From the NCBI GenBank assembly GCA_965644295.1, contig CBFFRP010000547.1, positions 1-6,490 on the forward strand: 6,490 bases of DNA, written 5' to 3'. This document shows, piece by piece, positions 1 to 6,490 of the stretch. This DNA comes from Paraphysomonas bandaiensis. Taxonomy: Eukaryota > Protista > Chrysophyceae. The notes under the pieces were generated by a model. It saw nothing but the letters and a program-made list of their open reading frames with translations. It was not told where the DNA came from and searched no databases. Positions within the stretch are counted from its first letter, which is position 1. Each line of letters opens with the position of its first letter. The translations under genes were made by a program, and so were the position numbers.

Positions 1-822
1 TACCTCCCCACTGGCGGCAGCGTCAGCTATGTAAATACCATAGTCATTATAGGTCCATTTGTTCCGATCTTGTGTTCGTCGTTCTGGATGAGAGCGGACC
101 CATCGGATTGGCCGCTGTCGATGATTTTCTGTGGCGAGGCATTCATAGAAGATGCCCTGGGGCTTTGTGCCGAGGGCTCGCCGCCGACGAGAGAGAGCTT
201 CTGTGGTTCGTGTTTGTACTGCTTGGCAGTCGGTGCACATAGGTACGGTGGGGGATACGAGTTTCGAGAACGTTAGGGCTGCTGACATTGCCAGGGTCTC
301 GTAGGTGTATGGGGTTATCCCGGGTAGGGTATGCTCGGGAGCTGTAAGTCGAAGGATTTTGGTTATTCCTGTGCTCCAGTTGGTTTTGGGCGGAAGCCAG
401 ACGATTGCTGCCCCCCCGTTGTGCGTTGCGGGCTGCGTGTGAGAGTCACCTAGTAGATGAGCAGGAGAGAGGTTAGTGCGTGTGAAAGAACCATCGGTGA
501 AGATGGCTTGAAAATCGTGTGGGTGATTGTCGTGCAGTTGGAGTTGGGATTGGACCCTGTCGGTGGTTTCTCGGAATTGGGGCGTGGCCGGAGACGGGGG
601 CTGCAGTTGGATTCCGAGCTGTTGTCCCCATTGGACCAGGCTAGTGATGTACAGGTCGATGTCTGGGTGGTTGTGGTCGTGACGTTGTAAGATGGATATG
701 GCGGCTCGCTTGGGTTCCCCTCCAAGGGTGATGGCTCTTTGCAGTGTGTGCCACTTTTGGGTCTGGGCACAGGTGGAGAACTTACGCAAGCCAAGTCCTT
801 TATGTTTCGTAGGTAGATAGAG
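1..822 (-). CDS. Partial non-LTR retrotransposon polyprotein: RT thumb/connection plus ribonuclease H domain; 5'-truncated and running off the left window edge
   Basis: Manual translation of the minus frame (codons 822..1) has no stop for 274 codons: LYLPTKHKGLGLRKF...QAIFTDGSFT...NGGAAIVW...TPYTYETLAMSAAL...MCTDCQAV...IRWVRSHPERR...WTYNDYGIYIADAAA. All RNase HI catalytic residues are present in order: D (493-495), E (298-300), D (229-231), H (88-90), D (22-24). LPxxxxGLG (787-816) matches the motif that follows non-LTR RT domains. The frame is not in the supplied ORF track because it has no stop inside the window. Confidence 0.9.
1..822 (-). mobile_element. 5'-truncated LINE-like (non-LTR) retrotransposon with RNase H
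   Basis: The RT-thumb then RNase H domain order is typical of these elements. The RT catalytic core is absent, and the GC-rich coding composition stops abruptly at ~822 where a tandem array starts. Confidence 0.8.
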
Positions 823-1140
823 ATGTTTCACGACGAGAACCATCAGTACCATCTGGGACAATATATCAGTCATGGTTTCAGATGTCACACGACGGCAGTT
901 ATAACAGTAGAAATGGTATCAGATGTTTCAGGACGACGAGAAACATCAGTGTCATTTGGGACAATATCAGTAATGACTTCAGATGACACACGACGGCAGT
1001 TATAACAGTTGAAATGGTATCAGATGTTTCACGACGACGAGAAACATCAGTACCATCTGGGACAATATCAGTAATGACTTCAGATATGTCACACGACGGC
1101 AGTTATAACAGTAGAAATGGTATCAGTTGTTTCACGACGA
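821..1140. repeat. Tandem minisatellite, ~101-bp unit, 3 full copies plus a partial copy
   Basis: Units start AGATGTTTCA at 821, 921 and 1022, and AGTTGTTTCA at 1125 (periods 100, 101, 103). All share CACACGACGGCAGTTATAACAGT(A/T)GAAATGGTATCAG. Confidence 0.95.
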
Positions 1141-1221
1141 GTGTGACCACGTGGCATTTCCCATGCCCTATCTACGTGGCTATAGTATCACGCTATTGAG
1201 TCACATGCATGGTTACATTGA

Positions 1222-1300
1222 CTTTTAGGACCCTCTATTGGTTTAGGACCCTATATCAGGACCCTATATATTGCTTTAGGACCTTCATTGTGTTCAGGAT
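1222..1300. repeat. Short degenerate repeat cluster of (TTT/TC)AGGACC(C)
   Basis: AGGACC occurs four times between 1228 and 1283, with a degenerate TTCAGGATAC at ~1293-1302. Spacing is irregular at 13-20 bp. Confidence 0.65.
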
Positions 1301-1465
1301 ACATATTATGCAACACCATTTGGACATTGGTAATGTATCACAGTGTACCTACATATTGAGCCAACGTTCGGGTATGATGTCCAATTTTATCTGCTGATGA
1401 TGATGTACGACTATGATCTGCTGCTGGTGACTTCGGTCGATGTGAAACCTGCTGCAAATTTATAT

Positions 1466-2116
1466 CAAAGTTATGTGGGCCCGTATTCCTGTATAGCAGT
1501 TGCAGTATATACTTCCATATACATACATACATGTATTACCCGTACTACCCTATAGGGGGGCAAGTACATGTACACTTGAGATGCACGAGTGTTTATGCAA
1601 GGCTTATTGGGGTTCGATTGCAAATGTGGTATACGTACTATACGAACCGTATTTATGTATTTCCTGGATTAGGGGGTTTTCAGTCTCTGGTAGGGTATAG
1701 ATACGTACGTAGTATACGGTGTACTCTCGGCATATGGTGGTGAGTCACTCCCTATCAGGTTGCTGTGTATTTTCAGTTTTTGATTGAAGAGTTACGCAAC
1801 CTGTGGTGGTGTGATGATACCACGTGTGTTGCACCATGTTAGGAGTGTGTGTGTGTGCATATATGCTTCTATGGTGTTTATCACTTGTTTTAAGTTAGAC
1901 CAAAGCTTGGTGCTAGTGAACTTGGGTGCCGGCGGTATACCATTGCGCGGTGGCTCTTTGCGGGAGTCACTAACTAAGTTTAGGTCTAGACTTAGAAAAG
2001 TGTTTTAATAATAATACCATTATTACTGTTCTTTGTTGGTTCAGTGTAGTAGGTGTTATAGTAGTACTATTGTTTACGAGCCAACACCCTGGTTATCAAA
2101 CCGGGTGTTGTTATAG
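1466..2116 (+). repeat. Left arm of inverted repeat 1 (651 bp)
   Basis: By-eye alignment to the reverse complement of 3102-3788 gives about 9 substitutions and 5 indels (33, 9, 4, 3, 1 bp), which account exactly for the 36-bp length difference. Confidence 0.97.
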
Positions 2117-2624
2117 TAAATATTTACTTTACTGCTCGTACAGAAATTTCTGTCTTTGCGCTGTTGTTTCACACTCTTATAAGAAACTAACTGCGACACG
2201 CTTCTTTGGGCTTGATTCTTTGGGTTTGTTGTCTGTTGCCTTCGGTTGCCTGTGGTTGTTGGTTGTCTGTGGTCCTCTGGGTGTGAGTTGTCAGTAGTCG
2301 TTCTCTAGGCTCTTTGTTCAGTGGTGATTGTTTGATTCACAGTGTGGTGACTGAGGAAATTCGGTTCTTTTCGAAGTCAATCGACCGTGGATACCGCCTG
2401 TGTGTTAACTGTTGTCACTTGTACAAATCCGACGGGTTCAACGGGTTTGAGTGTTGAGTGTTGAGTTTTTGGATTCTTACGCAGGGTTGTCTTTGGGATT
2501 TGTCTTGGTGTGTTGTTGAGATCTGGGTCAGTGGTTCTAGGAGTTGCCAGGGTTGCTTGTCTCAGCGTGTTAGGGAAAAGTTTGGTGGATATAGTCTTTG
2601 AGGCGGAAGTTCTTCTCAGTAACC

Positions 2625-3107
2625 ATGTCTACTCCGACTGGTAAAACGAGGAGAGGCGGCAAGAAAACTCCTGGGAAAGATCAGGAAGCCGCTGGTAGTG
2701 GTGAAACCAAACAAGATGCTGCTGGAGGTGTGCATGATGTCGTTCAGGAGTCTTCTGCTCCAAACATCAATCCAAACCAGGAGATTTTGGATACAGTTCG
2801 TGCCATGTCTCAGTCTTTTACAGAGGTGGCTACTGCAGTGTCTAACCTCAGCAGCAGGATGCAAATATTGGAGGATAGAGTACAAAATGTTGAGGATGGT
2901 GAGAGCAGTCAGTCTCAGGCTTCTGTGGGCTCACATCAGCGGCAAAAGGTTACCAAACGCGCGTCGAAACACAAACGTCAGCCTAGGTATTCTACTCTGG
3001 AAAACATGGCTAAGTTTCGCATTATTCCTCAGGAGGAAGATAGCAACAAGGAGGACGATGGTTCGAATCCCGATGTTGATGGTGATGGTGCTAATGATGT
3101 GCTATAA
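2625..3107 (+). CDS. Hypothetical 160-aa protein: disordered basic N-terminus, coiled coil, basic patch and acidic tail; possibly an N-terminal fragment of a retroelement Gag/ORF1-like protein
   Basis: ATG at 2625 in an AACCATGT context. Composition is protein-like, with a heptad-like segment VATAVSNLSSRMQILEDRVQNVE. The stop TAA (3105-3107) lies inside the right inverted arm. No family motif was recognised. Confidence 0.6.
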   Translation: MSTPTGKTRRGGKKTPGKDQEAAGSGETKQDAAGGVHDVVQESSAPNINPNQEILDTVRAMSQSFTEVATAVSNLSSRMQILEDRVQNVEDGESSQSQASVGSHQRQKVTKRASKHKRQPRYSTLENMAKFRIIPQEEDSNKEDDGSNPDVDGDGANDVL

Positions 3108-3788
3108 CAACACCCGGTTTGGCAACCAGGGCGTTGGCTCGTAAACAATAGTACTACTATAACACCTACACTGAACCAACAAAGAACAGTAATAACGGTA
3201 TTATTATTAAAACACTTTTCTAAGTCTAGACCTAAACTTAGTTAGTGACTCCCGCAAAGAGCCACCGCGCAATGGTATACCGCCGGCACCCAAGTTCACT
3301 AGCACCAAGCTTTGGTCTAACTTAAAACAAGTGATGAACACCATAGAAGCATATATGCACACACACACACTCCTAACATGGTGCAACACACGTGGTATCA
3401 TCACACCACCACAGGTTGCGTAACTCTTCAATCAAAAACTGAAAAATACACAGCAACCTGATAGGGAGTGACTCACCACCATATGCCGAGAGTACACCGT
3501 ATACTACGTATCTATACCCTACCAGAGACTGAAAACCCCATAATCCAGGAAATACATAAATACGGTACGTATAGTACGTATAGTACGCACACCACATTTG
3601 CAATCGAACCCCAATAAGCCTTGCATAAACACTCGTGCATCTGAAGTGTACAATAGCGACTTCTCTCTTATGATGGTCACATACATGTACTTGCCCCCCT
3701 ATAGGGTAGTACGGGTAATACATGTATGTATTTATATGGAAGTATATACTGCAACTGCTATACAGGAATACGGGCCCACATAACTTTG
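3102..3788 (-). repeat. Right arm of inverted repeat 1 (687 bp)
   Basis: Reverse complement of 1466-2116. The identical 74-aa ORFs 1784..2008(+) and 3207..3431(-) in the ORF track confirm the duplication. Confidence 0.97.
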
Positions 3789-4149
3789 TGTTGTCATCCC
3801 CGTATAGGAGGTTGGCTGTCATTGGAGTGAAAGCTTGGTTTGATAGTATACTGCTGTATATTGCACTATACTGTGGATGTATAGTATACAGGATATATAC
3901 AGTGTAGACAGCCAGCTACAGTAGGGTAACGGTATACTATTATACGGTGTATGATGACAATACGGTGTAGGATATGTACAGTCCAATATGTACAGTGGAT
4001 TGGTATAGAGTAAGGGCATATATATGTGCCCAAGCAGTGAGCTGTAGGTGTAGTCTGTGATAGAAGATAGATTAGAATGCTAGTCATTATTATCACAGAT
4101 AACCTCTGATAAAACAAGTTAATAACACTATCGTTTACTATCAACTTGT
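3787..4149 (+). repeat. Left arm of inverted repeat 2 (363 bp)
   Basis: By-eye alignment to the reverse complement of 5230-5602 gives about 23 substitutions and 3 indels (5, 7, 2 bp). The inner ~112 bp are identical. Confidence 0.97.
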
Positions 4150-5229
4150 TATAGTTCTTCGTCGTTCTTCACTGTTTCAATGAATGCAAAAGAAGAGTTA
4201 ATTCGGAATAAGTTGAAAAGTGTCTCAAACATATAATAGGGTATATGTTACATGGTGAAGTAAAGTACATATATTTTGTTCTGCAATTTGTATGGATTTA
4301 GTTGATGATCTTAATAGATTGTGTGAGAATCTTTGAGACAAAGTAATTCGGATGTTCAGTTGTTCGTTATGAGTTATGTTCAAATATTGTGCTACAATTA
4401 TAAAGGAAAGGAGTGATTGGTATTTCGACAATGCCGGTTCAGTGTTCGACAGCTTGTGAATTCAATGACCATGCAACATTATTTAATTCGTGCAGTGGTA
4501 CAGTGTGTGTGTTTTCTTTTTTCCTCGAATGACCCGTTGTTATTTATATTCCAATGGTTCTTAAAGTTACGCATTCGTGATGGTTGTGTGTGATGTTACG
4601 AAGAATATGTGTTCAACAGTATCATATTATCAGGAGTGTTATTGTAGCGACGACATTATTTGATCATAAATTTATTGGAGATTTTCCTGACAGCAAGTTT
4701 CAATTTCGATGATGGTTATCGGCAGCAGTTGAATGAATGACAAATAATTGCATCTGCATTCTCCATGTGAGTTTATAATGTTGACATTGTTGGGAGGAGT
4801 GTGATACTACTGTATACTCTTTCGAGAGTGTTATTTTCAAACAAATCCATCATTACTGCGAAGGATATAATGTCGAAAGAGTTCAATGCATTGGTCGATA
4901 GTTTATTTCAGTATGAGTTGGTGATATTATGAAGGAGAACTTGGTCCTTAGGCACGAACAAGGATCAGAGCTGGTTATATATGGCAGTTCAGAAGGTCGA
5001 CTACATGGTGCTCATTTGTGTGAGTTAAAGTCCAATACTGAGAGATATTTGGTTTCGAAAATTGCTTGCGGGCTAGGCCTACTTGTGTGCAGTTGGAACC
5101 TACTCTAATATTTGCAGATAAAATGCGTTGTTGATTATTATGGAGGAGTTTTTTTTTAGTGGAAATCATAAGAAGGTCCTGCGGAGGATAAAAGAGAAAA
5201 CAGGGAATGTTGTAAGGCAATAACAAGCC

Positions 5230-5602
5230 ACAAGTTGATAGTAAACGATAGTGTTATTAACTTGTTTTATCAGAGGTTATCTGTGATAATAATGACTAGC
5301 ATTCTAATCTATCTTCTATCACAGACTACACCTACAGCTCACACCTTGGGCATATATATGCCCTTACTCTATACCAATCCACTGTACATATTGGACTGTA
5401 CATATCCTACACCGTATTGTCATCATACTCCGTATAATGGTATACCGTTACTCTACTGTATACTGTAGCTGGCTGTCTTCACTACCATGTATATATCCTG
5501 TATACCAGGCACCCACTGTATAGTGCAGTATACTGCTGTATACTACCAAGCCAAGCTCACAATCCAACGACAGTCAATGTCCTATACGGGGATGACAACA
5601 CA
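5230..5602 (-). repeat. Right arm of inverted repeat 2 (373 bp; extends to ~5218 if a 7-bp insertion is allowed)
   Basis: Reverse complement of 3787-4149. ATAACAAG-CC-ACAAG-TTGAT at 5220-5239 suggests a small duplication at the inner edge. Confidence 0.97.
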
Positions 5603-5727
5603 CCCTCCTATGTTCAGTCCAACGCCTGATCTGCTTATCGTCCATAAGATTATGAACCTATAAATAAATATTAAATACCATGACATCAATCGGCTATTGC
5701 TCGACTGAGTCACAACCCCCCCCTTAA

Positions 5728-6310
5728 TGCTCTGTGTCATAGGCTTTAACATCCCAAATGAAACGCAGGCCTTTGCCTATAGACAACATAAAGTGCTCTG
5801 TGTCATAGGCTTTAACATCCCAAATGAAACGCAGGCAATTGTCTATAGGCAGAATAAAATAATGCTCTGTGTCATAGGCTTTAACATCCCAAATGAAACG
5901 CAGGCCTTTGCCTATAGACAACATAAAGTGCTCTGTGTCATAGGCTTTAACATCCCAAATGAAACGCAGGCAATTGTCTATAGGCAGAATAAAATAATGC
6001 TCTGTGTCATAGGCTTTAACATCCCAAATGAAACGCAGGCCTTTGCCTATAGACAACATAAAGTGCTCTGTGTCATAGGCTTTAACATCCCAAATGAAAC
6101 GCAGGCAATTGTCTATAGGCAGAATAAAATAATGCTCTGTGTCATAGGCTTTAACATCCCAAATGAAACGCAGGCCTTTGCCTATAGACAACATATAGTG
6201 CTCTGTGTCATAGGCTTTAACATCCCAAATGAAACGCAGGCAATTGTCTATAGGCAGAATAAAATAATGCTCTGTGTCATAGGCTTTAACATCCCAAATG
6301 AAACGCAGGC
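5728..6310. repeat. Higher-order tandem repeat: 135-bp dimer (66+69 bp) x4 plus one extra core; nine identical 43-bp cores
   Basis: TGCTCTGTGTCATAGGCTTTAACATCCCAAATGAAACGCAGGC starts at 5728, 5794, 5863, 5929, 5998, 6064, 6133, 6199 and 6268. Linkers strictly alternate between A (CTTTGCCTATAGACAACATAAAG, 23 bp; one SNP in the 4th copy) and B (AATTGTCTATAGGCAGAATAAAATAA, 26 bp). Confidence 0.98.
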
Positions 6311-6490
6311 AATATTGTCCGAAGACAAGAAGATAACGAGAATACTCGTTGATTCAGAATCTGAATAACACCATAATTAGTTATATAATATCACGAAATA
6401 CTCAACACATCATGCATATATTATAAATTTTAATTTCTCTTCCCTGTTTACTCCTTCATTCCAAGCAACAGCGGCCGAAGGCGATGAAAA

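Follow-up and report, generated by a model that had tools for sequence, protein, structure and literature searches.

Two adjacent foldback units in a Paraphysomonas bandaiensis contig are probably nested LTR retrotransposons

A 6,490-bp contig from the chrysophyte Paraphysomonas bandaiensis (CBFFRP010000547.1, hereafter C547) carries two adjacent foldback units, each with long inverted arms around a centre of about 1 kb. The whole contig, referred to here as the window, is built of repeats only, and belongs to an assembly of 62.5 Mb across 669 contigs. An original prediction held that the inner edges of the arms share a motif pair, TTGTTATAG...GCWATAACAA, which marks a programmed cut or join site where ~1 kb of cargo is loaded, swapped or flipped. 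Our analysis points to a different origin. With a probability of roughly 0.86, the window is a stack of nested long terminal repeat (LTR) retrotransposons, formed by three successive insertions and one internal deletion.

According to this scheme, a Ty3/gypsy copy (A2) would have inserted backwards into the gag of another copy of its family (A1) at position 3102, leaving its LTR terminus to face the A1 5' LTR across ~1 kb of leader and gag. A non-autonomous element (B) would then have inserted into the A2 LTR at 3788 and lost 2.2 kb through a microhomology-type deletion, which removed the last 22 nucleotides of its 5' LTR and the adjoining part of the interior. An element of a sister subfamily (B') would finally have inserted backwards into B at 5207, and the contig ends inside this last guest. 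The foldback look of each unit would thus consist of a host 5' LTR and a guest's inverted 3' LTR, because a backwards guest located after the host 5' LTR necessarily presents its own 3' LTR terminus first.

The long inverted arms reported by the original prediction are real (unit 1, about 1466-2126 and 3092-3788; unit 2, 3787-4149 and 5230-5602). Each arm type is present in at least 40 genome copies, among which direct pairs at constant spacing are common; this spacing is 7.5 kb in copies of the unit-1 arm and 4.3-4.7 kb in those of the unit-2 arm. When the window is compared with other copies, 1136-3102 is collinear with family A (reference copy L061), 3102-3788 with an inverted family-A LTR, 4148-5207 with the interior of family B, and 5200-6310 with an inverted B-type 3' end.

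Family A is a Ty3/gypsy (Metaviridae) LTR retrotransposon, as judged from its enzyme order, LTRs, polypurine tract and target-site duplications (TSDs). The full-length copy used as a reference, L061 (C69:293500-303499), has direct LTRs of ~1 kb with 96-99% identity that lie 7.49 kb apart (7488-7490 bp), and the same repeat spacing recurs in C121, C258 and C546. This copy carries a 603-amino-acid open reading frame (ORF) at the gag position and a 1302-amino-acid pol ORF in which reverse transcriptase (RVT_1, 359-486), RNase H (RT_RNaseH, 579-685) and integrase (Integrase_H2C2, 763-812; rve, 838-925) follow one another. The polypurine tract AAAACGGGGGAGGAGGCAG is located immediately 5' of the 3' LTR. 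The family-A LTR reads TGTGACC...GTTGTTATA, with ends set by 4-bp TSDs in three other copies (CAAT in L062, TTCG in L064, and GGAG for a solo LTR in L063). Moreover, the base that follows ...TTATA differs freely across a dozen family-A copies.

Two features of family A depart from the textbook form of Ty3/gypsy elements, though not from its enzyme core. First, the LTR begins with TG but ends with TA in most copies rather than with CA, the latter being present in L023 and L062. Second, a perfect 12-nucleotide palindrome, GTAAATATTTAC, occupies the position expected for the tRNA primer-binding site. It follows directly after the A1 5' LTR in the window (2116-2127, plus strand) and after the 5' LTR of six more copies, namely L061 (2404-2415), L062, L063, L064, L020 and L023. 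Every family-A copy with internal sequence that was examined has this palindrome, and none has a TGG-type site there.

Some further observations were made on this family. The string TGTTATAGTA occurs twice near the end of the LTR, at window positions 2054-2063 and 2109-2118, 55 nucleotides apart. Its inner copy reads GTTGTTGTAG in the L061 sublineage, and this lack of conservation suggests that the inner copy is probably non-functional. L061 itself is without a 4-bp TSD, and the 107 nucleotides past its 3' LTR (L061:9894-10000) are those of L061:1181-1287, which start 219 nucleotides upstream of its 5' LTR. This copy is therefore probably either a recombinant or located in a duplicated or tandem host repeat.

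Unit 1 begins with the complete 5' LTR of A1 (1142-2115, plus strand), which is collinear with that of L061 and of which the previously described left arm represents only the last 650 nucleotides (1466-2115). The A1 internal region follows (2116-3102, plus strand; 94% identical to, and collinear with, L061:2404-3386) and comprises the leader and the first ~160 codons of gag, starting from an ATG at 2625; in L061 the same reading frame continues to its full length. The right arm is an inverted family-A LTR belonging to A2 (3103-3788, minus strand), which is 96% identical to the 3' LTR of L061, has a flush 3' terminus, and is interrupted on its other side by the family-B insertion. The true LTR/flank junctions of unit 1 are located at 2115/2116 and 3102/3103.

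These assignments account for both 10-mers of unit 1. The last eight nucleotides of the family-A LTR, TTGTTATA, are present on both sides of the unit. On the left, TTGTTATAGT (2108-2117, plus strand) is composed of these eight nucleotides and the GT of the internal palindrome. On the right, GCTATAACAA (3101-3110, minus strand) is composed of a GC from gag and the reverse complement of the LTR terminus. The GC corresponds to the final two bases of the interrupted gag, where L061 reads ...gatgtgc and continues with ctaccc. The left/right asymmetry thought to be kept in both units is merely flank sequence (GT of the palindrome, GC of gag), because the two extra letters lie outside the LTR terminus in unit 1. 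Copies of the unit-1 arm always end at TTGTTATA, because this sequence is the LTR end. The proposed likeness to LTR ends and other integrase substrates is correct insofar as TTGTTATA forms the 3' end of a Ty3/gypsy LTR, but the polarity is reversed, in that the arms are the LTRs. Likewise, what had been viewed as a cargo bounded by TG...CA is ordinary retrotransposon internal sequence, which in unit 1 is A1's own leader and truncated gag.

Family B, together with its sister subfamily B', is a non-autonomous LTR element. In L065 and L066, direct LTRs of 380 bp with the ends TGTTGT...ACAACA are located 4.69 kb apart, and 5-bp TSDs (CTAAC, CTTGT, ATGAA, AGTTG, GGTCA, CTCAC and TAGAA) were recognized in at least six family-B copies, several of which are solo LTRs. 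A search of family B for coding capacity yielded a longest ORF of 137 amino acids, and no gag or pol. The LTRs of B and B' are ~90% identical. Elements of the LARD/TRIM type are similar to B/B' in having direct LTRs, TG...CA ends, 5-bp TSDs, a polypurine tract, non-coding interiors and many solo LTRs. In contrast to that type, B/B' elements reach ~5 kb and carry a long internal tandem array with 129- or 135-bp units.

In B' the repeat unit of this array is 135 bp (window 5725-6313) and in B it is 129 bp (L065:5558-6631), each being composed of two ~66-bp half-units, and the copy number of the array differs among copies of both. In B copies, including L065 (2338-2360), the 5' LTR is directly followed by (C/T)TAACTTGTTCTCGAGAG. 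No obvious tRNA-type primer-binding site is present after this LTR, and the 8-nucleotide palindrome TCTCGAGA is found instead. A further observation concerns the end of contig C139 (L068, C139:100000-109280, around 8340-8380), which forms a near-palindrome without a spacer. Its arms of at least 0.9 kb are 94-99% complementary, and it is centred within a family-B LTR; the sequence at the turn is garbled. This near-palindrome may be either a fold-back assembly artefact at the contig end or a real inverted duplication.

Unit 2 is built from both subfamilies. The B 5' LTR (3789-4149, plus strand; 99% identical to many copies) has a flush start, TGTTGTC, but is without its last 22 nucleotides. It is followed by a segment of B interior (4150-5207, plus strand) that corresponds to L065:4544-5603 and is 99% identical to B interiors in C129, C392, C139 and C478; the centre of this unit is therefore non-coding B interior. 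The right arm is the complete inverted 3' LTR of B' (5208-5602, minus strand), flush at its terminus (TGTTGTAAGG... on the plus strand). Beyond it, the inverted B' interior (5603-6490, minus strand) proceeds from a polypurine tract adjoining the LTR through the 135-bp array to the contig end; B' copies from C399 and C99 match 6300-6490 collinearly at 99-100%. The two arms of this unit consequently belong to different subfamilies.

Neither 10-mer of unit 2 has the same nature as its counterpart in unit 1. The left TTGTTATAGT (4146-4155, plus strand) is formed by TTGT from the B LTR and TATAGT from the B interior (L065:4544 onward), which meet at 4149/4150. After ...ATCAACTTGT, 24 other B LTR copies go on with GGCTTGTTATTGCCTTACAACA, which amounts to 22 additional nucleotides, whereas ...ATCAACTTGT followed by TATAGTTC is found in the window alone. 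In intact copies, TATAGTTC... is B interior located 2.2 kb downstream, where it is preceded by ...gatcagt, and the microhomology at the TTGT/TATAGT join is 1-2 nucleotides. As read from these alignments, the join at 4149/4150 represents a unique deletion scar and not a boundary signal. The right 10-mer, GCAATAACAA (5217-5226), is the reverse complement of TTGTTATTGC, which originates from within the 22 terminal LTR nucleotides. It thus lies 10-19 nucleotides within the B' LTR, which in fact terminates at 5208 (junction 5207/5208). The four sites originally regarded as equivalent arm-to-interior junctions are therefore LTR termini in unit 1, and a deletion scar (left) and LTR-internal sequence (right) in unit 2.

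An inversion of the 3' part of B was also considered for unit 2, since the similarity between the inverted part and B ends at L065:5606, adjacent to the 5603 junction. This possibility was rejected because the inverted part belongs to the other subfamily and is collinear with B' copies beyond this point, and because weak similarity continues across it.

In three joins of the window (3102/3103, 3788/3789 and 5207/5208), the sequence changes precisely at an LTR end whose position was established in other copies. Probes of 120 nucleotides, centred on 3102/3103, 4149/4150 and 5207/5208, were used to search the genome for copies spanning these junctions. Each of the three probes matches end to end on C547 only, among the best 40 of about 70 candidates scored per search, in which a spanning copy would rank first. 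Other copies align to one half of the probe and break at the junction. Because the three probed junctions are single-copy, the foldback units are not propagated structures, and their interiors are not themselves mobile segments. A further inverted junction of B within B was observed in C478 (L069, C478:1-6000, at 659/660), where the 3' terminus of a family-B LTR abuts a tandem-repeat unit belonging to a B copy in the opposite orientation. This junction is independent of that in the window and is located at a different interior position.

Because the positions of three of the four joins agree to the base with independently defined LTR termini, we infer that these joins were made by integrase-mediated insertion and not by random breakage. 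The order of the insertions and the deletion given above is likewise the one that the arrangement of the elements suggests.

The data above bear directly on the proposal of a programmed site for loading, swapping or flipping segments. The positions of the 10-mers given by the original prediction and the lengths of the TGTTAT...ATAACA segments (1001 and 1079 bp) were all borne out. The units match each other at 10/10 and 9/10 positions of the motif pair at similar locations, and a first-order Markov simulation gives a nominal chance of ~4e-4 that two 30-nucleotide neighbourhoods share an exact 10-mer in one comparison. The pattern with no more than one mismatch also occurs eight times in the window, compared with 2.6 expected. 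However, six of these eight matches come from three sites, each of which is counted once per inverted arm (2053/3157, 2108/3102 and 4000/5369), and the value of 4e-4, though nominally rare, belongs to a match chosen post hoc in a very large scan. That match also rests on a T-rich word, TTGTTAT, which both LTR families happen to have close to their 3' ends, and no mechanistic link was found between the family-A terminus and the B deletion scar. The 10/10 match between the units is most likely a coincidence, with the unit-2 motif being a chance look-alike of the family-A LTR terminus.

Other observations also argue against a programmed site. Both interiors, truncated gag in one case and ordinary B interior in the other, continue on both sides in other copies. 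The inner edge is not constant among other copies of the unit-2 arm, given that 24 of them extend for 22 more nucleotides and the C478 junction is elsewhere in the interior, and the join to TATAGT is unique; for unit 2, such variability is what the original prediction itself named as refuting. Moreover, the right motif of unit 2 is off the junction, and the only recombinase encoded here is the elements' own integrase. The string match is real, but the programmed boundary drawn from it is not, and the proposal is largely refuted; we consider it to be exceedingly improbable. A DIRS-like or foldback transposon was rejected as well, because intact copies of both families have direct LTRs and the integrase is of the DDE type. 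The long inverted arms around a 1-kb centre create only a superficial likeness to FB-type and DIRS-like elements. Here, the native repeats are direct, only this contig has the inverted arrangement, and there is neither a tyrosine recombinase nor an FB-type transposase.

The inverted joins might alternatively be absent from the genome and reflect a chimeric or fold-back long read, or another assembly artefact. The contig is short, is composed entirely of repeats and ends within one, no reciprocal junction is assembled, and the near-palindrome within a B LTR at the end of C139 has the appearance of a fold-back. However, random chimeras break anywhere, whereas three of the four joins here are located precisely at LTR ends known from TSDs elsewhere. 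Between the unit-1 arms there are private indels of 29, 9, 4 and 3 nucleotides as well as substitutions, some of them at family-polymorphic sites, and the unit-2 arms, which are only ~90% identical, derive from different subfamilies. Hence the arms are not two strands of one molecule. Moreover, fold-back reads have no unique loop of 1 kb. An artefact of this type therefore appears to be quite unlikely.

Another possibility is that every foldback stems from one element and one event, with no separate second insertion. The event could be autointegration, in which the 3' LTR end of a cDNA attacks its own interior and inverts the distal part, or an inversion through recombination between inverted copies. 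Autointegration inversions in retroviruses and Ty1 are established biology, and they have the topology of a 5' LTR, proximal interior and a flush inverted 3' LTR. This is the topology observed here, and it is present in two adjacent families. For unit 2, however, the arms represent B and B', and the inverted part remains collinear with ordinary B' copies past the inversion end that would be required. Judging from the sequences, a single-event origin of unit 2, including one from a single cDNA, is excluded, because its arms are of different subfamilies and the inverted part continues as a normal B' copy. In addition, autointegration products are circles with both ends consumed, for which there is no normal chromosomal route, and the sequence upstream of the A1 5' LTR is a tandem repeat and not inverted gag. 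As an explanation for both units, single events seem very unlikely.

The independence of the unit-1 arms was assessed by identity ranking, a tree and a site-by-site classification, the last of which revealed no exclusive shared-derived site between them. Nevertheless, several points weigh against the interpretation of the window as nested insertions. The unit-1 arms are 98.0% identical over ungapped columns, are mutual first or second nearest relatives and are weakly paired in the tree, and thus they may have a common origin in one event (an autointegration-type inversion or recombination). Two side-by-side inverted nestings within the same family, along with a 10/10 match (p ~4e-4), make an unlikely combination, albeit one recognized post hoc. 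No chromodomain that could account for self-targeting was detected in the family-A pol. Finally, nested insertion would place the gag continuation, CTACCCTCATGG, beyond the right end of the contig. A search by pattern for the reciprocal junctions of all three insertions (the other LTR end, TSD and host continuation) found none in this fragmented assembly. Since all three would lie beyond the right end of the contig, their absence counts in effect as one, and it leaves the insertions without proof from TSDs.

A variant of these ideas is that a 5' LTR, ~1 kb of interior and a flush inverted 3' LTR of the same family are the footprint of a recurrent, self-directed process. Such a process, either an autointegration-like inversion or strong same-family targeting, would operate in palindrome-primed elements and leave foldback relics in chromosomes. 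We regard this as a highly improbable reading of the two units.

The remainder of the window also consists of repeats. Positions 4-821 (minus strand) hold a fragment of a third repeat family (C), part of another retroelement, for which at least 40 copies with 73-97% identity all match this same interval. In one of these copies (L071), a weak reverse-transcriptase ORF on the minus strand adjoins the match. Tandem Repeats Finder identified three copies of a 101-bp tandem repeat at 830-1140, immediately upstream of the family-A LTR.

Nested insertions of LTR retrotransposons are known from maize and other eukaryotes, in intergenic regions rich in repeats. The window resembles such arrays in that its interruptions fall exactly at LTR termini, that families and orientations are mixed, and that the genome also contains solo LTRs and copies with internal deletions. 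It differs from typical arrays in that both nestings are inverted and within the same family, which creates the foldback look, and in that the assembly contains neither the reciprocal junctions nor the TSDs of these insertions. The pattern is therefore already known and belongs to ordinary repeat biology.

These findings provide a clean negative result, as a double foldback with a shared junction motif is explained by LTR termini, nested insertion and one deletion scar, and a new recombination system is not required. One feature of wider interest is the palindrome that replaces the primer-binding site in family A. In addition, base-exact boundaries are now available for one Ty3/gypsy family and one non-autonomous family, which aids the masking and annotation of the many repeat-only contigs in the genome of this protist.

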